Positions 26,217 to 49,395 of a stretch of 64,000 nucleotides of DNA are shown piece by piece. This stretch comes from Blepharisma stoltei ATCC 30299. Lineage: Eukaryota; Protista; Ciliophora. How positions within the stretch are numbered: position 1 is the stretch's first letter; each line of letters begins with the position of its first letter. The notes below the pieces were generated by a model. That model did no database searches, was not told the origin of the DNA, and saw only the letters and a program-made list of their open reading frames with translations. The stretch covers positions 992,001-1,056,000 of the forward strand of contig CBFDEM010000011.1 of NCBI GenBank assembly GCA_965603825.1, given 5' to 3'. Both the position numbers and the translations under genes were made by a program.

Positions 26217-26912
26217 ACTTTAATTTTAATTTTCAAATGTTACTCGATTTACTAAATGCTCTTTATTAAATTTAATTAATATGCATTAAATATAATCTTT
26301 AAAAAAAAAACCTTTTGGCTGGAATCGTAAACATCATATAAATTATGTTTTTCTAATGAAATTTGAATATATAAAATAAATGTAATATGAAAACCGTGTA
26401 ATAATTTTAAAGAAATTAAAATTTTGAGGCTGGATATTGAATGAACAATTGAAAGGATTTATTGAATTTTTTGAGGTAAAATAGTTAAACGATAAGTTTG
26501 AGTATAAATTAGCTTTTGAAGACTGGATTAGGAGTGAAATTGATGAAAATCAGATAAAAGTCTGATAGCATTGGAAGCAAGCATTATTTTTGCTTTTTAT
26601 TGCTTAATTCAAAGAATTATTTTGAGATAGAAAGTTTTTGTTTTTGTGATAATTAAAAGACGCTTTTGGCACAACCCATTATTCTTATTAATACATAATG
26701 CTTAAATTCCAAATTAAATATAATTTTAATCACATAGTTTTAGTAAAATTTTATGTTATGGTTTAAATAAATTATTGAATTTCAAGTTAAACAAATAAAA
26801 TTGAAATGTAATTGAATAATTATTTTATCGAATTTATTTGTGGCCTTGCGCTTTGATGCCTTTCAGAATATACTCTTAATATAAATCTTGCGATTTTTAT
26901 TAAAAAATAAGT

Positions 26913-29783: not shown

Positions 29784-30011
29784 ATCAATTCCTTTAGCAA
29801 ATCTTGCTATATAAATAAATAGCATAGTGAATCATAAGTTTTAAATTATTCATATATTTAAATTTACTGTAATTAAATTTTAAACCAAAAATTGAATTAA
29901 GCTCTTCTCCATGAATTTGATAGAACCTTTATTTATTTGCAAAATTTGCACGACTATAACTCTTCAAGTCCTCAAAATTATAAATTCCGTAAGATATTTT
30001 AAGTTACCTAA

Positions 30012-31721
30012 ATGGAAGAAGAGCCATATGAAATTAATGAAGAACTAGACATCGCTGAACTTGCAGCACAAGAAAGCCTTGAAGCTCTTTATGAATGTGG
30101 AGCCCAAATATTATACGATCACTATATTCGTGATAAATCAGTCCCATTTGCAGCTCAGCAAGCAGTTTCTATCATAGGAAGCACTGTTGAGCTTTATTAT
30201 ATCCGCCAAGATACAGGAGAGCCAGAAATATGAGAAGAAATCCCTGAGCCTAGTCCTTGCGTAATAGATCCATGGATGAGAAGTGTCGTACCAGTTAAGA
30301 AAAAATTCAAAGAGCCAGAGCCTGACGAGCCTTCAGGACAGTCTGTTATTTCTGTCGAAAAAAGCATGAGAAGTCATAAAAGTTTCCGGTCATCTCGTTC
30401 AAGTTTCAAAAAAAAGACAAGCCCAACTAAGTCAACCCGTGGATTCCAAAACAATTTAATCACTGAAGAAATCAAGCCAGTTCCTATTCCTAACGTTGTC
30501 TCTGACAGTTCAGAAGATGAAGCTGAAAACCAAATGAGGGAAATGAAAGAGAGACAAGTAAAACGGAAAAAAGAGGAAAAAGAACGGCTTAAGCAGAGAA
30601 AAGAAGAAGAAGCAGCAAAGGAAAGGGAATATCAAAGGGAAGCTGAAGATTTGAAAAATAAAATGTTTACTTATGATTTTGGAGGAAAAATTATGATTGT
30701 GAATCCAATTAACTTTGAAAATGTTAATGCATATAGCACTTCTACGATGAAATATGCAGTTCCAGAACCGATTGCAGAAGAGCTGACAATGAAAGATAAG
30801 AAAAAAAAGAAGGATAGGACGGCAGTGTCAGATTTTGGGATAATAAAACCAAAAAAAGTGCCTCCAGCAAAAGAGCAGGAGTGGGTAAGGAATGCGACAT
30901 CACTTTCTGCATCAATTTTCGATAATATTAATTTGAGCCTTGGAGTCACAATTTTTGACGGAAATCGCAGCAAACTTCCTCTATCAAGTTCTCAGTCAAA
31001 GCTAAAAACTATGAGCAGGAAAGAATATTTTGGGATAACGGCTAGAGAGCATGCATTCAGAAGTACTGGAGATCTACAAATAGCGAAACAAGAAAGCTTG
31101 CACTCTTCATCCGCTAGCAGACAAAATACAATATATAAGCTGCCATCAATAGCATCTGCAAGAACTAACAAAGATTTGCTTGAAAATATACCTGATAATG
31201 AGACTCATGCTGAAGTTGAAGAAAATCCTCAAAATTCTCTTAAGCGGGCTCCAACTGAAGATATTCCTCAGATTTCTGTCAAGGAGACTCCTCAAATTAT
31301 TTTAGCTAAATCCCCGCAGTTAGAAAAAATAAGGAAATATGAAAATGTTGAAAATATCAAAGAAATGAGTCCAATTGACAAGTTCAATGTAGAAATTTTG
31401 AAAAATAAAAATTGGGGATTAAATCCTCCTTTTAAAGGAGCGAAACTTCCTGCCAAACTTCCTAATAGGAATATATCCCCTCGGCAACAATATGGAATTT
31501 ACGGAGACAAAATAAGAAAACCCAAAGACAACCCATTTGCATCTGCAGAAGAGCTCTGGGAATCCCAGAAAAATTCCATCAAAAGGCCAAGAGACCGTAG
31601 ATTCATTGAGCGAGTTGAGCACAAGCAGCGAATGCCTCCCCCTCCTTTTGGACAATCAATGGTCGACTACTCAACCCTAGCTTCCACAATCCCAGAAATG
31701 CAAGAAAAATCCAATAATTAA
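30012..31721 (+). CDS. C2orf81/DUF4639-like protein, ~569 aa
   Basis: ORFs 30012 and 30276 are joined by TGA 30231, giving DTGEPEI(W)EEIPEPSPCVIDPWMRSVVPV (family W..D.EP.P...D.W...VP); TAA 31719. Confidence 0.7.
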
Positions 31722-32165
31722 TTTTATTTATAATTTATCAGCTGCAGTTTCTTTGTAGTTTTCATCTTCAATTCAAGCGTTGGAGTCCTTTCTATCACAT
31801 TGGGGGTAGCTCTTCTTAATAGTTATTCTTGCTTATCTTCTTTCAAATCCTCGAGCTTCATATTCTATTTTTTTGATAAATCCTTCAAATCTTTATTACT
31901 TATATTGAAGCCTGATTTTATTAAATTGAACTTTATTATGTAAATAATTAATAACAGATAGTATTATAAAAATACTTTACTCAAGCAGATATTTTAGCAC
32001 TCTCAAAATTTACTTTTAAAAATTGAGCATAATTTAAATTTCACCTCCAATATACTGGACATTTTCTATCAAAGTCTCAATTCGATCCATAAGAAAATAA
32101 AACCCATATATTCTAATTACATCATAATGGCTTGGTGTCTATAAACCTGTATTTGACTGATCAAT
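31590..32165. repeat. Copy A of a diverged inverted segmental duplication (partner ~48028-48725)
   Basis: Collinear matches in inverted orientation span the C2orf81-like 3' end, the stop-to-stop spacer and the CDPK 3' end. Confidence 0.88.
31728..32165 (-). pseudogene. Decayed 3' fragment (EF-hand/C-terminal part) of the CDPK gene at 46972-48621
   Basis: The reverse complement aligns to 48028-48621, e.g. ATTGATCAGTCAAATACAGG vs ATTGACCAGTCAAACACAGG. ATGAAGCTCGAGGA and CCAACGCTTGAA are identical. Stops, frameshifts and deletions are present. Confidence 0.9.
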
Positions 32166-32291
32166 AATTATAAAATGGAGTCGAAACTTTTTCCTTCTTT
32201 GAGATGGGGTTGAATTTTCCTGGGCTATATCAGCATCAACCGAGCGCATAGGCTGGAGCGCCTGATCCTTGGGTTTTAGAAGTATAGGCTT

Positions 32292-32466
32292 TTACCATTC
32301 AAAGCACTTAGTAGAGATACTCTTAAGTAGAAAATACGTAGGAGTCAAGTTTAGCTGTATCTATTTTGGATTGTATTAGTATGTCTGATCTAAATGGGTT
32401 GGGGAAGAAATTCTCGTTACAAGCTGTAGTAAAATTGGGCATCGATCTCTGGGAAGAGGAACACAT
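32292..32466 (-). CDS. Candidate small gene or pseudogene (52 aa to first TAA) with a 16-nt intron at 32322-32337
   Basis: ATG 32466, 43 open codons, GTATTTTCTACTTAAG (A10), 9 codons, TAA 32292. The same frame stays open 42 more codons into the CDPK remnant. Confidence 0.35.
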
Positions 32467-32686
32467 TAAATATTAAGTTAATAAGTAAGTATTATGATAA
32501 TTGAATTTCATTGATAAAAGAGTTGCTTAGTAATTATATATAATCGAGAAACTTTATTGAAAACTCTAAATCAATTTGACGATGAAATCCGATCAAGAAT
32601 AAATTCATTACTCAATCATAATTATAAAATTATGTCATAAATATAAAATGAGAAATATACAATTGAGTCCTTATAATTAATTTTCT

Positions 32687-33061
32687 ATGGAAATGGAAAA
32701 AAGACCCAACCCTGAGTCTTCATCTCAGCCAAACCAAACTCTTTATATAAAGAACTTAAATGATAAGGTAAACAAACTTGAAGTGAAAAGACTTTTATAT
32801 CAGCTGTTTTCAGCATATGGATATATTTTAGAAATCTATGTAAGCAAAGCTCCAAAAAAGAGAGGACAAGCCTTTATTGTTTTTGATACAGTTCATGATG
32901 CAGCGCTTGCCTTGCAAGCGCTCCAAAATTTCAGTTTTTTAGAAAAAAATCTTAATATAGACTATGCGAGAGACAAAAGTGATGTTATTGCTAGAAAAGA
33001 AGGGACTTATGAGAAAAGAGCAAAACAAAAGAGAGAGGCTGAGAGAGCAGCGAACACATAA
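32687..33061 (+). CDS. U1A/U2B''-family snRNP protein, single RRM, 124 aa
   Basis: PNQTLYIKNLNDKV, LFSAYG, KRGQAFIVF, ALQNFSF, IDYARDKSDVIA..GTY match RRM1 of U1A/U2B''. Confidence 0.9.
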   Translation: MEMEKRPNPESSSQPNQTLYIKNLNDKVNKLEVKRLLYQLFSAYGYILEIYVSKAPKKRGQAFIVFDTVHDAALALQALQNFSFLEKNLNIDYARDKSDVIARKEGTYEKRAKQKREAERAANT

Positions 33062-33433
33062 CCTAGAAAAATTAACTTAATTCTTTACAAATTTTATTGT
33101 AAAAGTTTATTATATTCTAGGCAATTTTGCTTAAATTTAATGAAAATCTCTTCCAAAGTTTTATAGCATGAATAAGCATTAAATTTCTTGAAAAATTAAT
33201 GGAAAATAATCTAACAGAAGTTGTGTTATTTGGCTGGAGATTTGAGGAATTGTGAAGAAGAAATACGGGAACTATGTTGGATTATAAATCGAGGAAATTG
33301 TAAAAATCAGAAGAGAATTGACTCCTTAAGTAGTGAAACCGCTAATTATTATTACTATAGCATGAGAGTGCAAATTCTTTGCCCACATAAGGTGATAAGA
33401 GTTAATTATTAAAATAATTGAATTTATTTACCC

Positions 33434-34084
33434 TTAGCAGCAGCCACTTTTCTTTTGGGTCAATGATTTCCCACCCGCCAATTTTTGTCCTTTTGGTTGA
33501 GTACTTGGTACGCCTTTTGCCGAAGTTGACGCAATTCTTCCTTTGATTTCTCCAGCCATTCTTAAAAACGATTGTTCTACATTCGCTGAAGTTTTAGCTG
33601 AAGTTTCAATAAAATTAATCCCCATTGAATCAGCTAATTCTTTTCCTTCATCATAAGTAACAGCTTTTTTGCCTTCTAAATCTGCTTTATTGCCCACTAA
33701 TAGGCGGTTCACGTTTTCGCTGGCATATCTTGTAATTTCGTTCATCCAGTTCTTGACATTTTCGAAGGACTCTCTGTTTGTTACGTCATATACAACGATG
33801 ATCCCATGGGCGCCTCTATAATAAGATGAGGTGATAGTTCGGAATTTCTCTTGCCCTGCAGTATCCCAGATTTGAAGCTTAACCACTTTGTTCTCCACCT
33901 CTACCGTCTTTATTTTCTACATGAACCATACAAAATCTACTCCAATGGTAGCAATGAAGCTCTCTGAATAGCTGTTGTCAGCGAAACGAAGGAGTAAGCT
34001 TGATTTTCCGACTCCAGAATCCCCAATTAGAAGAAGCTTGAAGAGATAGTCACTTGATAAAAATTACTATTCAGGGTTTGCCAT
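33434..34084 (-). CDS. RAB1: Rab1/Ypt1 GTPase, ~206 aa, two 15-nt introns
   Basis: [29 protein letters not shown]|[36 protein letters not shown]-terminal CC. Confidence 0.96.
33917..33931 (-). other. 15-nt intron GTATGGTTCATGTAG
   Basis: Removal restores the invariant GVDF-KIKT; A10; in-frame TAG. Confidence 0.95.
34053..34067 (-). other. 15-nt intron GTAATTTTTATCAAG
   Basis: Removal restores EYDYLFK (TA|T); A10; retention creates TAG. Confidence 0.95.
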
Positions 34085-34397
34085 TTATTATAAAGGTCCT
34101 AGAATGTCAGGTGCTATCAGTAATAAAATGATATAATTATCAGATTTTAGAGCTGCTAGGGATAAGGGTAGCTATGGTTTTGAAATATGTAAAAATTATA
34201 GTAAAAAAATGTTGAAATTAGATGATGGTGATTCATATAGTCAGAATAAAATTTCATATTTGCAACGATTAAAATACAAATTTACATTAAATTCAATTTC
34301 TAAAGCCTCCACTACAATGATCTTTAATATATATCCCTGATTTCCTTCCAAAAATGCAGCGATCATAACCTTTTAAGAAACTATCTAATCTATTAAA

Positions 34398-34819
34398 TTA
34401 ATGCTTAGGCTTGAGTTTCTTGAGTTCTTGTCTGACCAATTGCGACTTTTTCTTTTGGTTGACCATGAGTTTGAATCTACCGAAATCTGTGAGTTCTGCT
34501 CTTCTGAGTCTAGATGCAATTTGTTTACCATGAGTGCTTTCTTGCCACTTAGATAATATGTTAGAATCAGTGAAAATCTTTGCAACGTTTGCAGAGGTCT
34601 GATTTCTCTTAACTGGAAGCACAAACTCAGTCAATGAAAGTCTTGAAAAAGGCATTTGCTGACGAAGGACTCCTGTAGCTGCACCATCAACTAAAGCTCT
34701 TTTCCCGTCTATTACGTCCACAATCACGCACAATTTGTCTTTTTCAGGTCCAAAATTAACGTATGCAACTCTTCCAATTTCGACAAATCTGGAGTGTACC
34801 TATGGTAGCCATTTACCAT
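34398..34819 (-). CDS. RPL14: 60S ribosomal protein L14 (eL14), ~134 aa, 17-nt intron after ATG
   Basis: M|VHSRFVEIGRVAYVNFGP..VIVDVIDGKRALVDG..LTDFGRFK; TAA 34398. Confidence 0.95.
34800..34816 (-). other. 17-nt intron GTAAATGGCTACCATAG directly after the start codon
   Basis: This is the only nearby way to place an in-frame ATG on the conserved RPL14 N-terminus; the ATG inside the intron is out of frame. Confidence 0.8.
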
Positions 34820-35387
34820 TTGAGCCTTGAGTTAAGTATTATATTACATGGAAAGGGATAAAGAACTGGAGAGAAATGAAAGTGGTAAAAATTAATTTAA
34901 TGGAAAAGAATAAGAAATTGATATGCAAAAGAAGAAGATTATGGTGATAATGAAGATAAGAAATTGGATTTCAGAGTTCGGATGAATTGTGTGGTGGAAT
35001 AATTTTCTAACTGAAATGTATAAGGGAGAAATGCGCAGTGTGTTTATGACACAAAATTCATTTAGAAAATGCATGTTGCATACCAATCTTGCAATTTCTC
35101 TAATTGTTTTTCCAATTCAAGCTTGAGAAAACAATTTGAAATTTGATCCAACATCTTACAATACATAAGGTGTTAATTGCTATATTTGCATCTAATAGTT
35201 TTTTGAAATTCATTTGCAACTCTATTATAATAAGAAATACGTAAAAAATTGCATATAAATCATAATTAAATTATTTTAAAGTAATCAGAGATTGCATCAA
35301 TCAATAAATTCTTCAAGCGATTATTACTTCAATTATCTGCATTTTTAAAGAACATAAATTAATCGAAAAAATTAATATTTAAACATC

Positions 35388-36839
35388 ATGTCCACTGCTC
35401 AAGACTATGATGTCGACGAAAGAATTTCCACAATTAAAAGTTCTTTAAAACGAATCCAAAGCTCATTTCTCGGAGAAAGCTCTTCTTCTTATATCCCTGA
35501 CATATCTCAAGCAAATTCTCAATACTCAATCAAAACTCCAGAGCCTAATGAAAAATACCCACCTGAAAATATTGACAATACTACTACCACGAAGCCAAAC
35601 TCAAACTATCACACGCCTTATGTTTCAAATTATGTCGCATTTGGTGGAAATTCTAAAGAAGAAAACAGCTCATTCAGTGATACTCAATCGCCTAAGCGCC
35701 AAGACTATATTCAAACTATGGATCCTACATCTTCAAGCTGATACCCAAAAAAACTTTCTATAGATGAGGTAGAAATCGATAATTTCCCAGAATTAAGCAA
35801 AGTAGAACAAGAAATAGCCCACAAGCAAGACCAAATTGATGAATTATTAGGCTGAAAATCAGAAATTATCAAAAAAATAGAGAAATATGAAGACGAAATA
35901 GCAAATAAAAATGATTTAATTGCAGAGCTCAAAGGAGAACTATTTGAAGCAAATTTACAAGTAAAAACTTTAAAAGCTAAAAATGAAGCAATTTTAAGAG
36001 AAATCGAAGAAAGCTCTATGAGGGACTCTGGGAGACTAGACAAAAGTGATTTAAAAAATAGAATTGCTGAGCTTGAAAAGGCTAGAGTTGATTATATGCA
36101 AGAAAAAGAAGAAATTCAAGAGGAGCTCCAAAGAAAATCAGCAAAAATCAACGTACTAGAACAAAATTACCTAACTGTAAAAAAAGAAAGAAATTATTTT
36201 GCAGATAAAAGCAAAGACTTAGAAACTAAATTAACAGCAATTTCTATAGAAAACTCAGAAATCAAACGAAAATTATCACTCCACTCCACATTAAGTTTAA
36301 AAAAATTAAAAACTATTGATAAAAATATCCCGATAAAGAAAGGACTAAAAACTTTGAAAGGAACAGAAAAATTGTATTGGCATAAAGAATTAGAAGGCAC
36401 AAATGAACATAAAGAAAGGCTTAATTCTCCGAGAGCTCTGTCAAAACAAAAAAAATCACCACAAAAAGAATTAACAGGGACATTTATGAGGAAAATTATT
36501 GGGCAGCTTATGGTAATATTAAAGGTGGAGCATGCAAATGAGCTAGTAGAAGCTTGTACAAATGCGGTAAAAGATGCAAAATTGTCACATGATGCACAGA
36601 AATTTCACAAAAAAATAAGCTCGTTGATTGTTAAATATTCGCCTCCAAATTCTGTTGAGAAACCTAGCCTCAATAGAGTATATAAGTGGATAAGGAGATT
36701 AATAGAGGAATATTTATTGATTAAAAAGCAACAAGAAAATACTCAAAAGCATACTCAAATAATACAGATGTTGATGAAAATGCTGAATGTCAATTTCCCA
36801 GAAGATATATTGACTGAATTAAAAAGAATTATGAATTAA
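35388..36839 (+). CDS. Coiled-coil protein, ~483 aa
   Basis: ORFs 35388 and 36018 are in one frame through TGA 35739 and 35853; long heptad-rich region; TAA 36837. Confidence 0.75.
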
Positions 36840-36855
36840 TTTAATTATTTCTAAA

Positions 36856-37569
36856 TTAATTTCTTGCCGTAAGATAAACAGATAAGATATCATCTTTATT
36901 TCTTTTCATTTCGTGGCATCTTAGCCTCTTTTTGTGAAGTTTTGATAACTTTGTTTTCAAAATCTCATTAAATTCTTTGTTTTCTTCAAGATTTATCCCT
37001 TTAGATTTTAAGATTTTTCCTATTGGGTTTAATAAAGAAGTTGAGCTATATCTAACCCTTTCGTTTTTAATCTTGATTTCTCTATCTTTTATAGGTGTAT
37101 TTTGGCTTGAAAGAGATATCCGTGACACTGGTTTAGATAAAGAATCTATCCTTGACGAATTTGGCGTTTTTTTCTGTTTTACAATTATTGGATTAAGATC
37201 TTCAGAGCTGCTGTGTGGCTTTATTTTAGGTAGCGGGATTCTTAATTTTCCACGATTTAAATCGTCATCAAAATCAAATGTATCAGTTACTATAGGTCCT
37301 GGTTTTTTAAATTCTCTTTTTTTTGTATATTTTTCAAAAATCTGTTCTGATGGCCTAATAAACGCAGATAATAAATTATCTTGCTTATTTTTTGGCAGTT
37401 GAGGACTTTGATTTGCTTTTTCTTTGATGAGATTCATAACAAGTGCATTAAATGTTTTAGATTTTCGATGACGAAATATACCTTTAGGCTTGCTTTTTCT
37501 GAAATTTATATAAGGGATGATTTCATTTGTTTTCAGTATAGGTTTGTAGCTTCCCAAGCGAATGTTCAT
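36856..37569 (-). CDS. Hypothetical basic protein, ~237 aa
   Basis: First ATG of ORF 36856-37620 (MNIRLGSY); K/S-rich; no domain recognised. Confidence 0.6.
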   Translation of the reverse strand: MNIRLGSYKPILKTNEIIPYINFRKSKPKGIFRHRKSKTFNALVMNLIKEKANQSPQLPKNKQDNLLSAFIRPSEQIFEKYTKKREFKKPGPIVTDTFDFDDDLNRGKLRIPLPKIKPHSSSEDLNPIIVKQKKTPNSSRIDSLSKPVSRISLSSQNTPIKDREIKIKNERVRYSSTSLLNPIGKILKSKGINLEENKEFNEILKTKLSKLHKKRLRCHEMKRNKDDILSVYLTARN

Positions 37570-38666
37570 TGATAAATTTATTAAATCATTTAATATAAAA
37601 AGAAATTTTTTAGAGTACACTAAATTAAAGATTTTTCGATATTTTTTTAAAATAATTTATTGATGGCAAAGATCATGAGTAAACCCTTTTGATTTATTTT
37701 TAATACATAAACTAGCACTTTCTCAAAAGTTAGACTTCAATAATCTTATACAAAATATTTTTATGATTTTAAATTGCTAGTTTACACAAAAATTAATTTT
37801 TCTTTTTAATAATTCTTATAATTGTTTAATTTATTATCTTTTCTACATAGAGTGATTTTGTTACCTTTTCATCAAAAAATAAATATTCAGCTTTTATTTT
37901 TTTTGCTATAAAGAATTTTATTTACTTTTTAACCTTTATCTACTTATTGTAAATTCAAATTATCAGCACAATAAGCACTTCTAGCTTCCCTTCTTGCATT
38001 TTATAGCATAAGCTTTGAAAATTGTTTCTTCATTTTGAAAAATATAATAATTATGCAAGAATAACTGTTCAAGTACTAGCTAGACTCACGTCTTGCAATT
38101 TTATATTTTATTTGTGTGATCTTTTATTATCGAACTTACACATTTAGAATTTCAAATTCAAAATTGATACAATTTTGTATCAAATTAAAGTTTCACCAAT
38201 AGTAAGACTAAATAAAAGTAATTGCATTTATTTCTGCTCTCTAATAATTTTATCCGCTTATCAAAACAGCATAATCATAAAGTAAAAGCTTATTGCATGA
38301 ATTAAAATCCAATAAATGCCGAATTAGCTTATCATTAGTATCCTTTTCAATATGAAATCTTCGGTTCAGTAAAAACCATTATCTAGAATTTAAAATTCAA
38401 GATTTTTATCATATTTTTCTTTATCTTAAATTGCCTGTTTAATTTTAGGATTTTCATTTCTCCAACCTCATATAAAAACTCTTCATATCTTCATTAAAAA
38501 ACGATAATCATTCAATTTTTGACAAAAAGTCGACTGTTTTGAAAATTAATCTTATGCATAATTCTTTAGATATTTGTTCATATGGGTTCTTATCCAGTTT
38601 TAAGTATTCCCTGCGATTGTAGGTAGCTGAATTAATTTATGTAAAGATTTGGTAGTTAATAAAAAC

Positions 38667-40874: not shown

Positions 40875-40953
40875 ATTTAAGGTAATTTAAAGATATAATA
40901 CAATGTTTCATTATAGCCTACGCTATTTTTGTAACTTTTAAGAATAAATTATA

Positions 40954-41466
40954 ATGGAAAGTGATGATATAACCCACGCGAGCAAAAAGAAAAAGACTGA
41001 AAACGGAGAAGCCATCACAGAGGTTGCAGACTTGCCTGAGCCAGAAGAGCCTGAAGAAAATGATGAAGCTGTCAGCGTGTTCCCTTTAGCAAGAATCAAA
41101 AAAATAATGCAGCTTGCCACAAATGAGACTATAAGGCTGGACTCAATTAAATTAATTGCAAAAGCGACTGAACTTTTTGTAGAAGAATTCGCAAAGAAAG
41201 GATTCCAATATACACTGGTTCATAAGAAAAAAACTCTTAATGCAAATGACTTAGTTGAAGCGCTGAATGTGCACTCGAATTTGGCTTTTATAAAAGAGGC
41301 GGGAATTATTATGTCAAGACCGCGGTCGTCAGTGAGCCAAACTGCTATGGAAATTGAAGAAAATCTTGAAGAAAACCTTGAAGAAAGCCAAGTGGTATTA
41401 AGTGAAGAAAATAAAGATATGATTATTGAAAGTGTGGAAAATAAAGAAAATACAAATGATAATTAA
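40954..41466 (+). CDS. Histone-fold protein of the NF-YC/POLE4/CHRAC1 type, 170 aa
   Basis: FPLARIKKIMQ..LIAKATELFV..KKKTLNANDL..LAFI with acidic tails. Confidence 0.85.
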   Translation: MESDDITHASKKKKTENGEAITEVADLPEPEEPEENDEAVSVFPLARIKKIMQLATNETIRLDSIKLIAKATELFVEEFAKKGFQYTLVHKKKTLNANDLVEALNVHSNLAFIKEAGIIMSRPRSSVSQTAMEIEENLEENLEESQVVLSEENKDMIIESVENKENTNDN

Positions 41467-41670
41467 TAAATTGAATTTTCCTAATTATTTATTTTATAAA
41501 AGAAATCAGATTTAAATTGAATAAATACTAATTATTTGCAAGGCAAGCTTATCTATGATTTATTTAAATTCTTCTAATTAATTATATTTCTGCATGCTAC
41601 CCGTTTTTTCAATCCTCTCTTATCATCAGTTATCAAATCTTATTTATTTCACGTTTAATGAACGATAAAT

Positions 41671-42285
41671 ATGTGGAATTCTGTCTCTTGCAACGTTGTT
41701 TACAAAAGATACCTGAAGGAAAAACAAGATGAAAATTTAAGGAAAAATATAATCCACGCAAAACCTATGATAGACACAAAGCCGCCAAAATCTTTTACAC
41801 ACTCTATAAACTTTTCAAAGAAGCATAAGATTACAGGTAATTCTCAAATAGAAAAACAAGAAAAAATTCACATGGAGAACCAAGTCTTGCTAAAGAAAAT
41901 GCTCACTATTGACTCAAAGCCTTCTGCTTTAAATTCACAAGAAATCGCTCAAGCCGTCAGATTCCAAGGAACACTTAATCTTCCTCTCAGAAACAGAATA
42001 TTAAGCGAAATTAAATCAGAAAATACACGATTATTTAAACGGATCCGAAATGCGCAGTCACAATATTCAATTGTTAAATGGGAAGAGTCAAATGCTTATT
42101 TAAATTATATAAAAAGCAATATCAGAAGAAATTCTGGGAGAATTGATAAAAAGTACTTTGAGCAGCAATATGAAGAAGACAGCGAATTTTATACAAATAA
42201 AGTGCTAAGACCGCTTACATCACTACACAAAAAAAAATGAATCGAAATCCAGCGTCCCAGTACAAAAGCAAAATCTGATGTTTAA
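41671..42285 (+). CDS. CFAP97/Hemingway-like protein (paralog of 6545-7183), ~199 aa
   Basis: AKPMIDTKPP, IHMENQVLLKKMLTI, IKSENTRLFKRI. TGA 42238 read through to TAA 42283; probable intron 41837-41851. Confidence 0.75.
41837..41851 (+). other. 15-nt stop-free intron GTAATTCTCAAATAG
   Basis: Matches the consensus (GTAA, A10, TAG) at the same codon position and phase as intron 6988-7002 in the paralog. Confidence 0.75.
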
Positions 42286-42336
42286 TAGTTTTTTATTTAT
42301 CATAGCTATTTCCTAAATTAATTGAATAGGCTTAAC

Positions 42337-44199
42337 TTATAAATCCTTTACCGCCTCCTCAGCAGCTTTTTCTCCTCCTCCAACTATTGCGTCAAAATCA
42401 TCTAAACTCCTCACTTCAGCAATTTCCATATTATAAGAGTCTTCCAAAGTCTTCAAAGTAGCCAGCTCTTCATCAGTTGTGACCAAACTAATACAAACCC
42501 CATGTCTCCCAAACCTCGAACACCTACCGCTTCTATGCAAATAAAGAACGTCATCAATATCTCTTGATTTTGGGATCCTTGGCAAGTCAAAATTAACGAC
42601 ACATTTCACCTTGGTGTTATCAATACCTCTTGCAAGCAAGTTTGTGGTTATCAAAGTCGCGTATTTTCCTTCAGTAAAATCGTTCATGGTCAGGTTTCTT
42701 TCGTCTACAGTCATATCTTGTCCCATAAGTAAAGCGCATTTCCATTCTTTTTTGGAGACGACACCATAGACAGTTCTAGCGAAATTGCAGGTATTGACAA
42801 AAGCAATGGAAACTCCGCTAGTGATTTTTCTTAAAATCTGCTCAAAAGTGTCTATTTTTGTGCTTTGAGGAGTTCTGAAATAATAGTGGTCAATAGTGTC
42901 GAGCATTAAATCTTCTTTTTTGATAGTAATTTCGTTAAGGTTTCCTAAGAGCTGCACTATATCAGTTTTTACACTATCTGTATAAGTAGCTGAAAACAAT
43001 AAAACTTGGACTTGGTCTCTTGGGAATCCAGTTTTAATGAAATCCTCAATTTTCTTAAAGTTTTCAAGATTATCTTTTTTGTTCAAAATATGGTCAGCTT
43101 CATCCATAACCAGCACTTTTAGTCCTTCCAAATTAATGCTTTTTGTTTTCAACGCTTTGAAAAATGACCCTGAAGACGCTACCAAAACTTGCCCATCAAT
43201 TCGTTCTCCACCTTTAGACAGCACAGACACAGAAATTCCGCAAGGATCCGCAAATCGCTTATATTCTTGGAAATTCTGATTCGCCAGCTCAATGGTGTGG
43301 TTAATGCAGATTACTTGTGTTTGAGGGTTATTTATATCCACCCTGCATAATGACCCTATTACAAAAGTCGCTGTTTTTCCTGACCCATTTGGTGCTTGGG
43401 CTAACAAATTTTCGTAGCCTTCTTTTAGTATCACTTCAATGCCGAAGTTCTGGATTTTTGATGGGAATGGGAATCCAGCTTGTTCAATAGCGGCTAAAAG
43501 ATTTTGTGGGATCGGCAGCTCGTCCCAGTCCTTATTAGCTCTGAAATGGGTTTGGGCAGAATGAGTTTCTGGGTCGAATTGCTCGTCTTCTTCTCTATAG
43601 AGGACTTCTTTGCCGTGGCTGTTTTCAAAGAATCTGCGGCGCTTAATTTTGACTTTTTCGAATTCGCCACGTTTGGGACCTTTCTTCCTTGGGGTGTCTT
43701 TGTATGATCTTTTTCTTTCTTCGTGGGGATGATCGTGAGACTCTTCATGATGCTCTGAGGTTTCTCGAGGCTCTTCGTCATGGTCGTGCCTTGGCTTGAA
43801 TTTTCGTTCTTCGCCGTGGCCTCGTCTGCTTCTGGAGCCTCGTGGATGTCTGTCAGTGTGGCTATAGTCTGTCGCTTCCCATGATTGGCCCCTGGATTCT
43901 TCTTTATGGGACTCTTCAGCAGTCCAAGGATCTGCTGATGGCTCTTCTTGTCTTGGCTCTCTGGATTTCCATGGCTGACCTTTGGATTCTTCTCTGGTAG
44001 AACTTGGGCCCCTCCAGCGACCTCTGGATTCACCTCTTCGGCCGCCTTCAGTTCCTCTTCTGCCTCTGCTTCGTCTTGGACGTCGTTCAGTGCGGGCATA
44101 ATCTGCAGTTTCCCATGATTGGCCTTTAGACTCTTCAGCATCAGGCTTTGCAGAAGAACCTCCTTCAGCACCCCAAGGGTCAGAATTGTCGTAGATCAT
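42337..44199 (-). CDS. DDX19: DEAD-box helicase Dbp5/DDX19 type with long repetitive N-terminus, 620 aa
   Basis: PSKIQ, NLLAQAPNGSGKT, DEADH, LLFSAT, LITTNLLARGID, YLHRSGRCSRFGRHG. Confidence 0.85.
   Translation of the reverse strand: MIYDNSDPWGAEGGSSAKPDAEESKGQSWETADYARTERRPRRSRGRRGTEGGRRGESRGRWRGPSSTREESKGQPWKSREPRQEEPSADPWTAEESHKEESRGQSWEATDYSHTDRHPRGSRSRRGHGEERKFKPRHDHDEEPRETSEHHEESHDHPHEERKRSYKDTPRKKGPKRGEFEKVKIKRRRFFENSHGKEVLYREEDEQFDPETHSAQTHFRANKDWDELPIPQNLLAAIEQAGFPFPSKIQNFGIEVILKEGYENLLAQAPNGSGKTATFVIGSLCRVDINNPQTQVICINHTIELANQNFQEYKRFADPCGISVSVLSKGGERIDGQVLVASSGSFFKALKTKSINLEGLKVLVMDEADHILNKKDNLENFKKIEDFIKTGFPRDQVQVLLFSATYTDSVKTDIVQLLGNLNEITIKKEDLMLDTIDHYYFRTPQSTKIDTFEQILRKITSGVSIAFVNTCNFARTVYGVVSKKEWKCALLMGQDMTVDERNLTMNDFTEGKYATLITTNLLARGIDNTKVKCVVNFDLPRIPKSRDIDDVLYLHRSGRCSRFGRHGVCISLVTTDEELATLKTLEDSYNMEIAEVRSLDDFDAIVGGGEKAAEEAVKDL
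43819..44181 (-). repeat. Intragenic degenerate repeat in DDX19 N-terminus
   Basis: DPWGAE..EESKGQSWETADYARTERRPRRSRGRRG / EESKGQPW / DPWTAE..EESRGQSWEATDYSHTDRHPRGSRSRRG. Confidence 0.8.
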
Positions 44200-44382
44200 A
44201 TTTATTGGATTCTACTTATTGAAGATGGAAGAAAATAAAGCTAAGGAAAAATTTTCAATTAGGGAAGAATAACATTTTTGCGCTTCTTTCAACAGATTAA
44301 AAAATATTAAATATTTACAGAAAAATGAAAATATATATGAGATAAAAATTTTTATGCATATAAATTCTAATAAATATTAATT

Positions 44383-45303
44383 TTATTTTTTCATTAGAAA
44401 TGGGTTCGTGCTTGCTTCTTCAAAGGTATTTCTCGATCTTTCTACTATAATACTTGAGCTTACACTTTTCTTATGCATAGGAGCTGTTTGCTGCCTAACA
44501 TGAGTTGGGCTTTCTTTTAATAGCTCTTTTAATGCGTCTCTCGCTTCTTCTAATTCTGCTTGTATTTGTTTATTATATTCATCACTTAAATAATTTTCAT
44601 ACATGCAGTCCTCTAGCTGTTTTTCTAGCTTCTTTTCATGCTTTTTCATTAATTTTATAGTCTCATCCAGCTTTGAATTCGCGTTTTCCATATATGACCG
44701 TTCGTCTTCTTTTTTCCGTGCGGCTGTATTAATTTTGTTCAATTTATAAGCAGTATTGATATAATTCAGCTGGGTTTGGAACAATTGAGTTTTTATATTA
44801 TGCGTCTTGGATTTCCCACAAAAATGCAAAAGTGTAGCTACTAATTCTTTGATTTGGATTGGAGTCATATAAATCGGTTCTGCTTGTGATGAATAAATCA
44901 TATTTAAAATTTCGCCTCAGCTCCTATTAACTGGCATACTTTGGCTAACCCTCATTCCTCTGATATTTTCTAAGCTTTGCCGAGACCTAATTGATTCTCT
45001 ATTAGTTTTACACTGAAAAAGCAAGTCAGCTAAATCTCTCGCTAGTTGTGCTTTTTCATGAAAATTAAAAGAATTTAGATCTGGCAAGCAAAATAAGGTT
45101 TCATCAGTTGTCTGGGCATTTTTATTGAATTCTTCGTTGATAGCAGAACTTAAGTTTTGAATCATTTTTTCAAGAAGATCTGATAATTGCTGCTCGCTTG
45201 ACATTTCTGAGATTGGCGTCATGTCTGCAATTGCATCTGTTGACGGCCTTGGTCCTTCAATTTTCTCAGTTTTTGTATTCAATGGCTGTTTATGAGATTC
45301 CAT
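44383..45303 (-). CDS. Hypothetical coiled-coil protein, ~306 aa
   Basis: ORFs 44917-45303 and 44383-44901 are in frame via TGA 44917. Confidence 0.7.
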
Positions 45304-45363
45304 TATTATAGCAAAGAATTAAAATTCTTAAACAGGGAGTCCATTTTTAAATAGTTAATCTTG

Positions 45364-46113
45364 ATGGAAAACAATAAAACTTCAAGAAGAGTTGAGTTTG
45401 CGCTATCTGGGCTACATCCTGCCTTATTTCTAACTGACGTCGATGAATATTTTATCTGCAGGATTTGCTATTTTGTTGTCAGAACACCACTTGCATGTAC
45501 AGCTTGTGAAAACCTTTACTGTAAAGAATGCGCTGAAAAATACATAAGAATCCGCGGCAAAATCTGTAAATACTGCAAAGCTGAGCTAAACTTACTAGAA
45601 CTCAGAAAATTCCCTTTGAAAATTTACAGCCAATTTACTTTATTTTGTGAAAATTATAATCATGGCTGCCGCTTTGAAGGGAGCATTGAAGAAATCCGTG
45701 CCCATATTCAAGAATGCGAATTTAGCTTGATTCACTGTTCTAACCCTCTGTGTACCAAAGAATTCTTATTAAAAGACTGCACGTTCCTTGACCTAAGAGT
45801 TTGCTCTTTAAAATGTAATGAAGCAGTCCAATTTTGGAATATTCTTGGCAAGCAAAATAAAATAGACTATATTAAGTTCTTCTGGCAATGCTTGGATGCG
45901 TATAAGACCAAGCTACAAAATTCTATTGAAGAAGAGTCTAAAGATCTAGCTGAAACTGGGGACGAAAAACTAAAGCAAATACAAGAGGAAACTGAAAAAC
46001 TGAGGCAGCAGCTTTATGAAGTAAAGCATTTGATTCATAATGGAAAATTGGTGCACTCAGTGTGGACTTGTTGTAAACAAGAAAAATATTCACAAGGATG
46101 CGTAAAAATTTAA
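45364..46113 (+). CDS. RING + TRAF/Sina-type zinc-finger protein, ~249 aa
   Basis: CRIC..CTACENLYCKEC..CKYC, CENYNHGC..HIQEC..CSNPLC, coiled coil, C-terminal H.G..WTCC..GC. Confidence 0.8.
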   Translation: MENNKTSRRVEFALSGLHPALFLTDVDEYFICRICYFVVRTPLACTACENLYCKECAEKYIRIRGKICKYCKAELNLLELRKFPLKIYSQFTLFCENYNHGCRFEGSIEEIRAHIQECEFSLIHCSNPLCTKEFLLKDCTFLDLRVCSLKCNEAVQFWNILGKQNKIDYIKFFWQCLDAYKTKLQNSIEEESKDLAETGDEKLKQIQEETEKLRQQLYEVKHLIHNGKLVHSVWTCCKQEKYSQGCVKI

Positions 46114-46155
46114 TAAAAATTTCGATGTTTATGATGTTTTTTTTAAAATTCTTTA

Positions 46156-46878
46156 ATGGAACCTCGATCTTTGAATATGCTGAAGGCTGTTATAGAGGAA
46201 AATATAAATCAAAAATTTTCTCTTATAGAGAAAGAAGTAATTGGACAGCAAGAAATCCTAGTAAAACTTATCGAGCAAGTAAATTCCTTAGCTGATCTGT
46301 TAAAAATCCCGATCCCTGAGATTTCTTTGCCTGAATTATCAATTCGCCCTATGCAAATTAAATTTCCACAAGAATCTGACACTCACCAAATTAATCAAGA
46401 TCACTTAGAAAATTTGCCATTAGCCAAGCGGCTTCAAGAAGAGCGAAAACTTGAAGCTCTTAAAAAGCAAGAAGAAGCAAAAAAACGATTAGAAGCTCAA
46501 AAGAAAAAATTAGAAGAAGAACGCGAAAAAGTAAGAAAATTAAAAGAAGAAGCTGAAATTAAAAGGATTGAGACTCATAAAACCAATGGAAAGCCTCCAC
46601 GGACAATTTTAAAAAATACCCAAGAAATAATTATTAAAGGAGGAAGAAAAAATTTATACACTGAAGCTGCTACTATTAACTTAACAGCAGCAACTGATGA
46701 TATAGACGAGAAACGCGAACTTTCAGCTTCAGACATGAACTTTGACCAGCTCAGTGGCTTCGGGAGCCGTGAACCTGAAGAATTTTCACTTTCTGACGAA
46801 ATAATAGAAGCGTTAGATTCAATGCATGATTTCGACTGAGGAAATGACATTTTTAATCATATTATTGAATCTAGCTAA
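46156..46878 (+). CDS. Hypothetical charged coiled-coil protein, ~240 aa
   Basis: ORF from ATG 46156; TGA 46837 read as Trp extends it to TAA 46876. Confidence 0.65.
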
Positions 46879-46971
46879 TTTTTTTACAAAGCGCTTTATA
46901 ATATAAAACATTCTTTTTCTTTCATTACAAAAAAAAATTAACTATTGTTACTGTAACATTTTATAATAATT

Positions 46972-48621
46972 ATGGGCGTTTGTATAAGTAAAGAAAATAA
47001 AGCCAAAAAGCCACACAGAGCATCGGTTTTATTGGCACCGGAAGTGTCCAGCAGCTCACGTTTGGAGTCAGTCAGAGATAAATTTGACTTTATTAAAGTT
47101 TTAGGCTATGGGCAGTTTGGAACTGTAAGACAAGCAGTCAAGAAAAATGATACAATGTCACAAAATAAAAAGTTATACGCAATTAAATCAATATGCAAGG
47201 ACAATGTGAAGAAGAATTTGGAGTCCATGAAAAGGGAATTGGAAATTCTAAAATTAGCCGATCACCCGAATATTGTAAAACTTTATGAAATTTATGAGGA
47301 TAGTAAATACATCCATCTGGTAATGGAATATTGCTCAGGCGGCGACTTATGTGACTATCTTATTCATAAAGAAATTTTAACTGAAAAAGAAGTTTCTGTA
47401 TTAATGAGACAGATGTTTTCAGCAGTTAACCATCTTCACCATTTAAAAATATGCCACAGAGACCTAAAGCCTGAAAACTTTTTACTGGCTAATAACAGCG
47501 ACACCCCAGAAGTAAAATTAACTGATTTTGGGATGTCAGTCAAATTTGGGGACGATAAAATGAAGTCAATGGTGGGCACTCCATATTTCGTTGCCCCAGA
47601 AGTCCTAAAAGGCCGATATGGCAAAGAATGTGACATCTGGTCTTTAGGCGTCTTCATGTACTTTTTGCTATCAGGACATCATCCGTTCAAAGGCCACGAT
47701 TTAAAAGAGCTTTTCCTTCATATCACAAAAGGTGAGTTTTCCTTCCCAGAGAAGCCATGGAGCAAAATTTCTAAAGAAGCCCGACACCTTATCCAGCAGA
47801 TGCTTAACACTAATCCAGCTAAAAGAATTTCAATATCTCGAGCCTTGGCTCATCCTTGGTTTTCTACTCTAGATGATCCAAATGAGCATCCTCCTCTAAA
47901 TTTAGAAGTTTTAAATTCTATGAAAAAATTCCAAGCCCCTAGTAAGCTATATCAAGAAGCTATGAAAGTTTTTGTGAGGAATATTTCTGAAGAAAGATAT
48001 GAAGAATTAGGAGCTGCATTTAAAGAAATTGACCAGTCAAACACAGGATTTGTAACCGCTCAGGACATTGTAGATGCAATGAGAAGAAATGGGTACGATT
48101 TACTTGTGGATGAAATTGAGACTTTAATGAAAAATGTTCAGTATATAGGAGGAGGAAAATTAAATTATACGCAATTTTTAATCGCAGCATTAGCGAGAAA
48201 AAAAATTATGGATGAGGAAGCGTTGTGGGCAGTTTTTAACCATTTTGATAATGGCCATACAGGGACTATAAGTTTAGAGAATTTAAAGTTTGCTTTAATA
48301 AAAGCAGGCTGCTTTATAAGTGATAACGATTTCGAAGAAATCGTCAAAGAATTCGAGCTAAAAGCTGGAAAAAACATGAACTATGAAGAATTCAAAGAAA
48401 TTATGACCTGCTTTTCTGAAGAAAACTCATTTGTTATGATAACTGATGAAGATGAAGCTCGAGGAACTGAAAGAAGACAAACTAAAAGACTGTCTGTAAG
48501 AAGAATTACTATCAGAAGAGCTACTCTCAACGTGATAGAAAGCACACCAACGCTTGAAACAAAAATGGAAACTATAAAAGAAACCGCAGCTGATACCAAA
48601 AATGAAGAAATTAAATTATAA
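46972..48621 (+). CDS. CDPK: Calcium-dependent protein kinase, 549 aa
   Basis: MGVCIS, LGYGQFGTV, HRDLKPEN, DFG, GTPYFVAPE, EF-hand loops DQSNTGFVT and DNGHTGTIS. Confidence 0.95.
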   Translation: MGVCISKENKAKKPHRASVLLAPEVSSSSRLESVRDKFDFIKVLGYGQFGTVRQAVKKNDTMSQNKKLYAIKSICKDNVKKNLESMKRELEILKLADHPNIVKLYEIYEDSKYIHLVMEYCSGGDLCDYLIHKEILTEKEVSVLMRQMFSAVNHLHHLKICHRDLKPENFLLANNSDTPEVKLTDFGMSVKFGDDKMKSMVGTPYFVAPEVLKGRYGKECDIWSLGVFMYFLLSGHHPFKGHDLKELFLHITKGEFSFPEKPWSKISKEARHLIQQMLNTNPAKRISISRALAHPWFSTLDDPNEHPPLNLEVLNSMKKFQAPSKLYQEAMKVFVRNISEERYEELGAAFKEIDQSNTGFVTAQDIVDAMRRNGYDLLVDEIETLMKNVQYIGGGKLNYTQFLIAALARKKIMDEEALWAVFNHFDNGHTGTISLENLKFALIKAGCFISDNDFEEIVKEFELKAGKNMNYEEFKEIMTCFSEENSFVMITDEDEARGTERRQTKRLSVRRITIRRATLNVIESTPTLETKMETIKETAADTKNEEIKL

Positions 48622-48725
48622 ATAAAATCAATCATTGGATTTTTGAAATTGTAGTCGACCATGTATTGTCTGAAAGGAGGCATTCGCTGCTTAAGCTCAA
48701 CCCTTTCAATAGATCTATGTCTGAT
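48028..48725. repeat. Copy B of the inverted duplication (partner ~31590-32165)
   Basis: See copy A. The junction 48613-48644 matches 31705-31736 at 30/32 nt in reverse complement. Confidence 0.88.
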
Positions 48726-48745
48726 CTTCTTTTCTCTTTTAATGT
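48628..48745 (-). pseudogene. Decayed 3' fragment of the C2orf81-like gene at 30012-31721
   Basis: The reverse complement contains AAGCAGCGAATGCCTCC (48676-48692 = 31623-31639) and ATGGTCGACTAC (48651-48662 = 31659-31670). It translates as RVELKQRMPPFRQYMVDY vs RVEHKQRMPPPPFGQSMVDY. Confidence 0.88.
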
Positions 48746-48824
48746 TAATTTAGCTTTCTAAATGCTGATTCTTATATAAATATAATGAATATATAGCAAA
48801 TCTTTATATGGCATAATTTCATAA

Positions 48825-49388
48825 TTATGATGTTAATAACGAATTTATTCTTGATTGGATTTCATTGTCAAGCTGATTTACTGTTTTCAATATAGTTTCT
48901 TGATCATACCTATACTTTGGCAAGCAAGCTCTTTTTTCTTCAACTGAAATACAGTCATCAGAATACACAAGCTGAGTTGTATCAAAACTTGTTGAAAACA
49001 CTGGCAAGGGTCATGATGTAAAAATTGATTGAGGTCCTGCAGCTTGTTCCGGGACTTCAATATCTTCAATTTTCTGCTTTTTATGTGCCATACTCATAGC
49101 TCTTTGTTCGACGAGTTGTGGAGGTACTCCTTCCATTCCAAAAATATCTAATTCAATAGCATCTCTTCCTGTCTTTGCATTCGGCACTTTCAGCACCTGT
49201 TCTTTATGCACTTGCAGCACATGTGTCGCCATCGATGCTGCAGTACTAAACTTCTTATGGCACGTATGACACGAAAAATGCCTGGCTTTTTGATGCTGAT
49301 GCAGTACAAATTCATCATCAAACTCTCTATCACAATAATAGCAAAAAGGCTTCAGGAATCTAATTTTTTGTCTATTCTTACGACCCAT
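48825..49388 (-). CDS. ZNF207: BuGZ/ZNF207-like C2H2 zinc-finger protein, ~187 aa
   Basis: [61 protein letters not shown]; TGA 49011; C-terminal [12 protein letters not shown]. Confidence 0.92.
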
Positions 49389-49395
49389 TTATAAA

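Follow-up and report, generated by a model that had tools for sequence, protein, structure and literature searches.

Inversions produced by staggered breaks have been described in the Drosophila melanogaster group by Ranz et al. 2007, where they leave inverted duplications at the breakpoints (PMC1885836). The duplicates range from 46 bp to 1.9 kb, and six cases have sequences of both breakpoints at each end (PMC1885836). Breakpoint regions are reused by successive inversions, and one duplicate decays by substitutions and indels (PMC1885836).

Here, we describe a comparable locus in Blepharisma stoltei, a ciliate whose somatic genome is very compact. It lies within a window of 64,000 nucleotides (the whole stretch of DNA analysed) on a contig that we call C11. 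As in Drosophila, ancestrally unique gene sequence has been duplicated in inverted orientation at both ends of a block, with sequences of both breakpoints at each end. The Blepharisma duplicates, of about 160 and 740 nt, fit the fruit-fly size range, and one copy of each decays. Unlike in Drosophila, the host is a ciliate with almost no intergenic DNA, and duplication has affected the overlapping ends of convergent and tandem genes, such that it looks necessary for survival rather than incidental. A further difference is that the net orientation of the block is the ancestral one, which requires a second nested event or a complex event.

Two other systems invite comparison. Replication template switching (FoSTeS/MMBIR) generates complex rearrangements, including inverted duplication-triplication structures at human disease loci. 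It shares with our locus several closely spaced junctions, inverted copies, duplicated flanks and an inserted stretch at one joint. However, neither microhomology nor a template source was identified here, and such models do not specifically predict two duplicate pairs with simple reciprocal polarity. The other system is reciprocal gene loss after whole-genome duplication, as in Paramecium and after the Blepharisma WGD-beta (PMC13685798). C11 and its paralogous contig, C51, likewise retain complementary gene subsets. Such loss explains the tolerance of the first breaks, but not mirrored gene-end remnants within one contig.

Two inverted duplicate pairs

The first duplicate pair, J, combines the 3′ end of a DUF4639/C2orf81-like gene (gene A) with the final 629 nt of a CDPK gene (Table 1). 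Gapped local alignment against the reverse complement of 48733-47993 identifies 31581-32200 as a decayed inverted copy of 47993-48733 (787 columns, 473 identities), and a repeat search of the window lists the pair as eight colinear inverted blocks. A first-pass annotation had interpreted these remnants as reciprocal inverted duplications of two gene tails, and the J pair shows both. The reading frames it gave (gene A ending at 31721; CDPK at 46972-48621) and its matching blocks were reproduced (31705-31736 against the reverse complement of 48613-48644, 30/32; the others 17/17, 12/12 and 14/14), and the inverted duplication is real, although the duplicated stretch is longer than was described.

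Decay of the remnants is dominated by short deletions, as the annotation had also proposed, with 185 nt deleted in 38 events versus 13 nt inserted in eight. The left CDPK remnant retains 381/471 identical positions and has 152 nt deleted. The right gene A remnant retains 86/103, with net deletions and a mutated stop codon; in this right-hand copy the gene A and CDPK stops are 6 nt apart. Apart from itself, 31500-32700 matches only the right-hand locus (E 3e-25 and 6e-28) plus two gene A paralogues in the whole 41.5-Mb genome. Consequently, the similarity is far beyond chance and J is no dispersed repeat.

A second inverted pair, K/K′, is absent from the first-pass annotation. It derives from the tail of a BuGZ-like gene (32489-32639 against 48966-48807, 79.6% identity over 162 columns) and is non-colinear with the J pair. 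The reading frame of K′ is broken upstream, while its last ~25 codons are still recognisable. Setting aside the old gene A paralogues, the rest of the genome shows J and K as single-copy sequence, and therefore neither was a pre-existing repeat. The three remnant pieces differ from their partners by 19.1%, 16.5% and 13.4% (81-87% identity). These values are statistically indistinguishable (chi-square p = 0.27), which is consistent with one event. In a phylogenetic tree, the left CDPK remnant falls with the C11 CDPK, within the C11/C51 split, with 100% bootstrap support.

Between J and K′ lies a 288-nt spacer. It has no second copy in the genome, belongs to no Rfam family, and shows no similarity to CDPK, BuGZ, C51 or outgroup contigs. 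Searches of the spacer itself returned no terminal inverted repeats, no fold signal (z 0.39) and no open reading frame longer than 61 codons. No shared repeat or transposon occurs at the two breakpoints in somatic sequence; contigs of sequencing run X6 break near 32476 and 32641. Run X6 also hints at extra DNA at 32476 and at 29835-29844, where one contig carries about 505 extra letters.

Homologues of gene A carry PF15479, and the gene is expressed, with an RNA contig covering 29998-31708. A second RNA contig (32695-33103) lies over the RRM gene, whose product is 74% identical to outgroup protein P0017 (203 aa) and lacks the second RRM domain of that orthologue; no remnant of this domain turned up in searches of the window, C51 and the rest of the genome. 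The BuGZ-like gene, when TGA is translated as Trp, extends from 49388 to its stop at 48825-48827, and is 80% identical to its outgroup orthologue.

Table 1. Features of the rearranged locus, in window coordinates.
Feature	Position	Strand	Description
M16-peptidase/gene A intergenic stretch	29784..30011		Derived junction of older event
Gene A, DUF4639/C2orf81-like	30012..31721	+	Intact ORF; flipped and moved relative to ancestor
J left, gene A part	31581..31721	+	Functional last 141 nt of gene A; aligns to reverse complement of 48733-48628
J left, CDPK part	31722..32200	-	Decayed antisense remnant of last 629 nt of CDPK
J/K′ spacer	32201..32488		288 nt; covered by RNA contigs 31980-32500 and 32155-32478
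K′	32489..32639	+	Decayed sense copy of BuGZ-like 3′ end; stops 47 nt short of RRM start codon
U1A/U2B″-like RRM gene	32687..33061	+	Pfam RRM_1; 124 aa; flipped and moved
RRM/Rab intergenic stretch	33062..33402		Derived junction of older event
Block M′ (Rab1-like to CDPK 5′ part)	33403..47992		Colinear and in same orientation as C51 and outgroup (tblastn synteny maps)
CDPK	46972..48621	+	Intact; Pkinase and EF-hand domains
J right, CDPK part	47993-48621	+	Last 629 nt of intact CDPK
J right (J′), gene A part	48628..48733	-	Decayed antisense remnant of gene A 3′ end
Right J′/K junction	48734..48806		73 nt; similar to neither partner
K	48807..48966	-	Functional BuGZ-like 3′ end: last ~47 codons, stop, about 20 nt further
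BuGZ/ZNF207-like zinc-finger gene	48825..49388	-	Ancestral place and orientation, adjoining COMM-domain gene

Ancestral gene order

The ancestral arrangement can be read from the paralogous C51 and from an outgroup contig of another species, L039. The annotation's proposal that gene A and CDPK were once tail-to-tail is borne out in both: their stops overlap on C51 and lie 25 nt apart on L039, with gene A on the opposite strand. Its expected synteny holds in that gene A adjoins CDPK on both contigs and that L039 places BuGZ upstream of RRM, with both on one strand, except that one extra small gene (Pterin4a) sits between the latter two. The adjacencies deduced from the remnants are thus real, since C51 displays A/CDPK and L039 displays both. 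C51 and the outgroup each hold one copy of J and one of K, and in the outgroup RRM starts 13 nt past its upstream gene. In an older paralogous region (C23), as on outgroup contig L037, gene positions place A and CDPK convergently, 5.4 kb apart in C23. Homologues of gene A and RRM in Stentor and in metagenomes have no conserved neighbourhood.

CDPK and its neighbouring block (of 16 kb) already have today's orientation relative to the BuGZ/COMM flank on both C51 and the outgroup, and relative to the left flank on C51. This conflicts with the annotation's single inversion of the ancestral order across about 32166-48745. The net change from the ancestor is that only gene A and RRM have switched side and strand; therefore, the annotated inversion has to be either the later of two nested inversions or one component of a single complex event.

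Other differences concern genes lost from the older junctions. Q, PTHB1 and Mpv17 are missing there and all survive on C51, and the complementary subsets kept by the two contigs are drawn from genes found together on one outgroup contig. C11/C51 homology downstream of the Rab gene ends at 33402, and gene Q, present at this site on C51 and in the outgroup, is absent here. At the opposite junction, neither C51 nor the outgroup has gene A, and 29784..30011 contains no detectable remnant and no significant similarity to the lost genes. The adjacent M16-peptidase gene is absent from both references and has no paralogue on C51; its relatives are only 42-44% matches in a representative search, and the outgroup locus carrying one is not syntenic.

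The derived A/RRM junction is common to a relative, X12, that is ~3% diverged and in which decay has proceeded independently. X12 has lost roughly 700 nt of remnant sequence, comprising most of the left CDPK remnant and the 288-nt spacer, and has kept only the last ~47 nt of K′. Because X12 shares the junction yet has lost so much of what lies within it, the remnants are junk.

Origin of the arrangement

On balance, we lean towards reading the locus as the scar of a germline genome rearrangement with two nested inversions, the second made by staggered breaks, and containing no working element. The order of segments is L-J-K′-M′-J′-K-R, the polarity predicted for staggered breaks. At the left junction, J ends inside CDPK (32200 = 47993) and K′ begins inside BuGZ (32489 = 48966); at the right junction, J′ ends inside gene A (48733) and K begins with its RRM-proximal end (48807). 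Enumeration by hand of the signed orders from (+M,-A,-RRM) to (+A,+RRM,+M) gives a single two-reversal path, and the second reversal has its breakpoints at A/CDPK and RRM/BuGZ, exactly where the duplicates sit. The staggered-break inversion put forward in the first-pass annotation is thereby strengthened, with a second pair at the other breakpoint, the predicted polarity and remnants of the same age, although it is not a single step from the ancestor.

Under the two-inversion history, C11 would have carried, after the duplication that gave rise to C11 and C51, the left flank, M′ ending in CDPK (+), A (-), (PTHB1, Mpv17), RRM (-), BuGZ (-), COMM (+) and the right flank. The first inversion would have turned M′ together with gene A, with breaks in or beside Q, PTHB1 and Mpv17, for which C51 had spare copies, and may have truncated RRM by removing its second domain. 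The later inversion, corresponding to the annotated one, would have turned the CDPK-to-RRM stretch back, with one pair of staggered breaks per end: about 740 nt apart across the A/CDPK tail-to-tail junction at J, and at least 160 nt apart across the end of BuGZ, just upstream of RRM, at K. Fill-in and end-joining would then place J and K at both ends in mirror orientation. The complete 3′ ends of gene A and CDPK, the BuGZ C-terminus and the region upstream of RRM would all have been preserved, probably making the event tolerable, and the four redundant copies would have been left to decay, mostly by deletion.

Several observations count against this history. Its intermediate arrangement was observed in no genome, and at each end no more than one gene (1.7 kb and 0.4 kb) separates the breakpoints of the two inversions, a closeness that is coincidence unless the sites are fragile or the two were truly one event. 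The 288-nt spacer is long for end-joining filler, and the left-flank history is incomplete because the M16-peptidase gene is missing from both references. Searches for footprints of the first inversion at 29.6-30.1, 33.0-33.5 and 26.2-26.9 kb yielded only weak AT-rich matches (E 0.002 at best), and alignments of the older junctions to lost gene Q were at shuffle level.

The main alternative, possible though doubtful, is one complex event, in which the A-to-RRM segment, reaching into CDPK and BuGZ, was copied or excised and placed inverted across block M′. Its ends would have been joined (CDPK 3′ to BuGZ 3′, with 288 nt of filler) and reopened between A and RRM, and the original deleted, by replication template switching, multi-break shattering or a circular intermediate. 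In its favour, the gene order at the left (A, CDPK remnant, BuGZ remnant, RRM) forms an exact circular permutation of the ancestral BuGZ-RRM-A-CDPK, and block M′ needs no move, matching its ancestral orientation. The four new junctions lie pairwise within one gene of each other, the unique 288-nt insert could be a templated insertion, and the remnants are equally old. However, such an event demands breaks or template switches at four or five points, along with a distinct donor deletion nesting just inside the copied segment, and no source of the spacer was found in the somatic genome. We consider it improbable that an A-to-RRM circle was excised and reinserted inverted 15 kb away in the germline, with the CDPK-tail/BuGZ-tail joint and its insert as the circle junction, possibly through DNA-elimination machinery acting at eliminated sequences beside the junctions. 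To our knowledge, heritable reinsertion of excised circles in ciliate germlines has no precedent; if true, it would amount to heritable cut-and-paste of cellular genes by a domesticated excisase. Against any complex event, paired inverted duplicates at two breakpoints are a specific prediction of the simpler staggered-break model (PMC1885836).

Two separate duplicative transfers (A with some CDPK tail; RRM with some BuGZ tail), side by side to the left of the block and followed by deletion of the originals, would likewise leave complete genes carrying foreign tails in the new place and stubs where they used to be. We find this distinctly improbable: it takes at least three events, adjacent landing and the same orientation, makes the equal J/K divergence and exact reciprocal polarity coincidental, and requires a donor deletion leaving stubs that overlap both transferred pieces. 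It is also very unlikely that inverted repeats already in place recombined ectopically, or that a whole block was duplicated in inverted orientation and then underwent reciprocal gene loss. Inverted homologous sequences do flank the block, but both J and K stem from gene ends that were unique in the ancestor, and C51 and the outgroup have each of them only once; the two pairs are non-colinear, whereas a duplicated block would be colinear. Moreover, the remnant boundaries are abrupt at 32200 and 32489, and the CDPK remnant is younger than the C11/C51 split. The rival raised with the first-pass annotation, duplication of both whole genes and reciprocal loss, was rejected because the left locus, set against the right one, which in reverse reads BuGZ, A remnant, CDPK, is a circular permutation of the ancestral block and no copy of it. 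An assembly artefact or chance similarity, for which nothing was found in favour, deserves almost no credence, given genome-wide E-values of 1e-25 to 1e-28 and contigs from other libraries and a diverged relative that independently span the left junction. The copies cannot confuse an assembler, being only 60-87% identical.

Gene order change in a compact genome

The rearrangement, of roughly 16.5 kb, probably copied the overlapping ends of four genes (A, CDPK, BuGZ and RRM), none of which was lost. No ciliate inversion with inverted duplicates of both breakpoints at its flanks seems to have been documented earlier; a literature search for work joining Blepharisma stoltei and inversion returned no paper. 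As a mechanism, it is already known from fruit flies. In this case two independent references, a paralogous block and another species, establish the ancestral state. The dated remnants provide a direct reading of neutral decay: deletions strongly predominate, and the ~3%-diverged relative has lost ~700 nt more. More broadly, the locus shows how gene order still changes where neighbouring genes abut or overlap. Breaks in such genomes seem survivable only if they copy the shared gene ends or hit genes made redundant by genome duplication.

Mirror-image gene ends at two loci

The two loci carry the same gene ends in mirror image (see table). Under gapped alignment, the larger pair, J and J', is a single inverted duplication holding the ends of gene A, which is DUF4639/C2orf81-like (PF15479 is found in its homologues), and of a CDPK with Pkinase and EF-hand domains. 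The four exact blocks that the first-pass annotation reported within this pair are all correct on re-checking. In the genome searched (41.46 Mb, 64 contigs), the left region has matches elsewhere only at the right locus (E 3e-25, 6e-28) and in two old gene A paralogues. A second inverted pair, K and K', had gone unnoticed and shows 79.6% identity. Because the BuGZ-like gene, in which TGA is read as Trp, has its stop at 48825-48827, K comprises its last ~47 codons and stop. The left copy, K', is a sense copy with a broken frame, whose end lies 47 nt short of the RRM start codon.

Coordinates of the features in the window, on the paralogous contig C51 and on the outgroup contig L039
Feature	Location	Description
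J (left)	31581-32200	Intact last 141 nt of gene A, then 479-nt antisense remnant of CDPK tail
J' (right)	Reverse complement of 48733-47993	Intact last 629 nt of CDPK, then 106-nt antisense remnant of gene A tail
K' (left)	32489-32639	Decayed BuGZ-like 3' end
K (right)	Reverse complement of 48966-48807	Intact BuGZ-like 3' end
M'	33403-47992	Block between the loci, Rab1-like gene to CDPK 5' part
BuGZ/ZNF207-like gene	49388 down to stop 48825-48827	Minus strand
BuGZ and COMM-domain gene starts	49388-49396	Divergent, 7 nt between
RRM gene	32687-33061	U1A/U2B''-like, 124 aa
Rab1-like gene intron	33917-33931	15 nt
M16 peptidase gene	26904-29783	ORFs 26913-28547 and 28554-29783; insulinase-type, ~955 aa
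Paralogous block	14600-56400	Versus G000:C51:386500-438200 (loci L022-L028)
Overlapping gene A/CDPK stops	C51:399612-399615	TTAA
Pterin-4a-dehydratase-like gene	L039:9661-9987	Gaps of 8 and 13 nt to BuGZ and RRM
RNA contigs (X8, X10), gene A	29998-31708
RNA contigs (X8, X10), RRM	32695-33103
RNA contigs (X8, X10), remnant region	31980-32500	CDPK-remnant tail and 288-nt spacer
Absent from X12	31880-32592
Extra letters in X6	29835-29844	~505 letters, bounded by 10-nt overlap
X6 contig breaks	32476; 32641	Bracket K'

Colinearity does not hold between the pairs: along the window, J precedes K' on the left and J' precedes K on the right. At the left locus, J turns its CDPK-internal end towards the BuGZ-internal end of K'; at the right locus, J' turns its gene A-internal end towards the RRM-proximal end of K. 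The observed arrangement, L-J-K'-M'-J'-K-R (L and R being the flanks), is the prediction of the two-ended staggered-break model. This model has been described for Drosophila, in which 17 of 29 inversions carry such duplicates, both breakpoints contribute duplicates in six, and breakpoints are commonly reused (PMC1885836). Identity at aligned sites (381/471 for the CDPK part of J, 86/103 for its gene A part and 129/149 for the BuGZ part, K) does not differ significantly among the three remnant pieces (chi-square p = 0.27), as one event would give. Decay has removed 185 nt in 38 deletions and added 13 nt in 8 insertions. A tree of CDPK 3' regions places the CDPK remnant as sister to the CDPK of C11, the window's contig, with 100% support and within the C11/C51 split.

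The published somatic genome of B. stoltei comprises 41 Mb, with UGA encoding tryptophan, 15-16-nt introns and short intergenic regions (PMC9942806). TAA and TAG as sole stops agree with the ORF statistics of the window, and at the intron of the highly expressed Rab1-like gene RNA contigs skip exactly 15 letters. The head-to-head pairing of BuGZ and COMM is conserved in the outgroup.

Ancestral gene order and the path to the present one

Three independent references inform the ancestral order: C51, a B. stoltei contig with a paralogous block, and contigs L039 and L044 of an outgroup organism that is related yet distinct (run SRR24908292, Logan assembly). The C51 copies of gene A (65% aa identity) and CDPK (81%) are convergent, and their stop codons overlap. 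The order on L039 is Aa_trans, a large gene, a HAT-repeat gene, COMM, BuGZ, Pterin-4a, RRM, Mpv17, PTHB1, gene A, CDPK and the orthologue of window 46147-46875. L044 holds the start of M', namely the Rab gene and its neighbour, gene Q, which is also on C51. Both adjacencies deduced from the remnants were therefore real: gene A and CDPK are tail-to-tail on C51 and L039, and at the other breakpoint L039 has BuGZ and RRM on one strand, BuGZ lying a short way upstream. Stop-to-stop spacing between gene A and CDPK is 6 nt in the ancestral C11 state and 25 nt in the outgroup, with an overlap on C51 that leaves zero intergenic DNA between these convergent paralogues.

C51 is colinear with the outgroup, without HAT, COMM, BuGZ, Pterin-4a and RRM. 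C11 has kept HAT, COMM, BuGZ and RRM (not Pterin-4a, which is absent at both window BuGZ copies), and lacks the large gene, Mpv17, PTHB1 and Q. Such complementary gene sets are the product of reciprocal loss after a duplication, presumably the reported Blepharisma-specific whole-genome duplication, WGD-beta (PMC13685798). Complementary retention extends across a large paralogous block. At this locus the outgroup falls outside the C11/C51 pair, and all genes retained on either contig occur together on L039; the locus duplication thus postdates the split from the outgroup organism. WGD-beta is described as Blepharisma-wide in PMC13685798, whereas the duplication at this locus is younger than that split.

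The first-pass annotation proposed a staggered-break inversion. Mirror-image duplicates from both breakpoints strengthen this reading, but the net orientation of M' is ancestral. With BuGZ, COMM, HAT and Aa_trans as the reference, CDPK and the block preceding it are oriented in L039 as they are in the window, and on C51 the entire block and the left flank (14.6-26.2 kb) are likewise in the window's relative orientation. Relative to the ancestor, M' is unchanged, while gene A and RRM have each been flipped and now lie on its other side. The present order consequently requires either a nested inversion that came first or a complex event. When reversals were enumerated by hand, exactly one two-step path led from the ancestral signed order (+M, -A, -RRM) to the present one (+A, +RRM, +M). 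M would have been inverted together with gene A in the first step, and together with RRM in the second.

The breakpoints of the second step, A|CDPK and RRM|BuGZ, are the exact sites of J and K, and we consider a history of two nested inversions somewhat probable. The first-step junctions lack Q on one side; on the other, PTHB1, Mpv17 and the second domain of RRM are missing. Tolerance of these breaks would be explained by the retention of Q, PTHB1 and Mpv17 on C51, the second RRM domain excepted. The first step has left no surviving trace in the sequence at its junctions. One complex event, through template switching, multi-break rejoining, or excision and reinsertion of a circle, would give the same four junctions, since circular permutation of the ancestral segment BuGZ-RRM-A-CDPK yields the left locus exactly and each second-inversion breakpoint is only one gene away from a first-inversion junction. 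Such an event, the main rival reading, is also compatible with the 288-nt spacer that separates J from K'; we nonetheless regard the event as unlikely.

The RRM gene is expressed, yet lacks the second RRM domain present in its outgroup orthologue (203 aa, 74% identical), and its truncation point coincides with a rearrangement junction. The M16 peptidase gene has no counterpart on C51 or beside the orthologous outgroup genes, and its nearest relatives (42-47%) occupy unrelated loci (C22, outgroup L045), indicating that it reached its present position by a separate event.

Remnants in other sequencing runs

Runs X8 and X10 are RNA, with the Rab1-like intron spliced out in both. Apart from the gene A and RRM transcripts, their contigs unexpectedly cover the CDPK-remnant tail and spacer, a region with no ORF above 61 codons, no Rfam match and no fold signal. 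This transcription is probably spurious, because the region is deleted in a close relative. That relative, X12, comes from the same study and is ~3% diverged from the window. One X12 contig joins 29950-31879 to 32593-34061 via 20 letters that are closer to intact CDPK than to the window's remnant. X12 therefore has the derived gene A|RRM junction, independent decay and a loss of ~700 nt that takes in the spacer and the greater part of both the CDPK remnant and K'. Either evolutionary deletion or developmental elimination in the X12 strain could account for the gap. Having been mostly lost there, the remnants are dispensable. X12 retains ~180 nt after gene A and ~95 nt before RRM, stretches that plausibly carry the 3' signals of gene A and the promoter of RRM.

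X6 shows full sequence identity with the window. Its extra letters, which fall between genes to the left of gene A, at the inferred older junction, may be germline eliminated sequence. One X6 contig departs from the window at 32476, running on for 155 unlike letters, and the next begins at 32641; these breaks may mark germline-only sequences. X6 and X7 hold only 91% of sampled words between the two positions.

Rearrangement in a compact genome

The anatomy agrees with Drosophila staggered-break inversions in every feature that could be tested, bar net orientation, the B. stoltei block being in the ancestral one. Our literature search found no paper pairing Blepharisma stoltei with inversion. 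Duplication as a means of rearranging a genome that lacks intergenic space, with no gene killed, is a reasonable proposal and one that fits the spacing of the gene A and CDPK stops, although it argues from survivorship.
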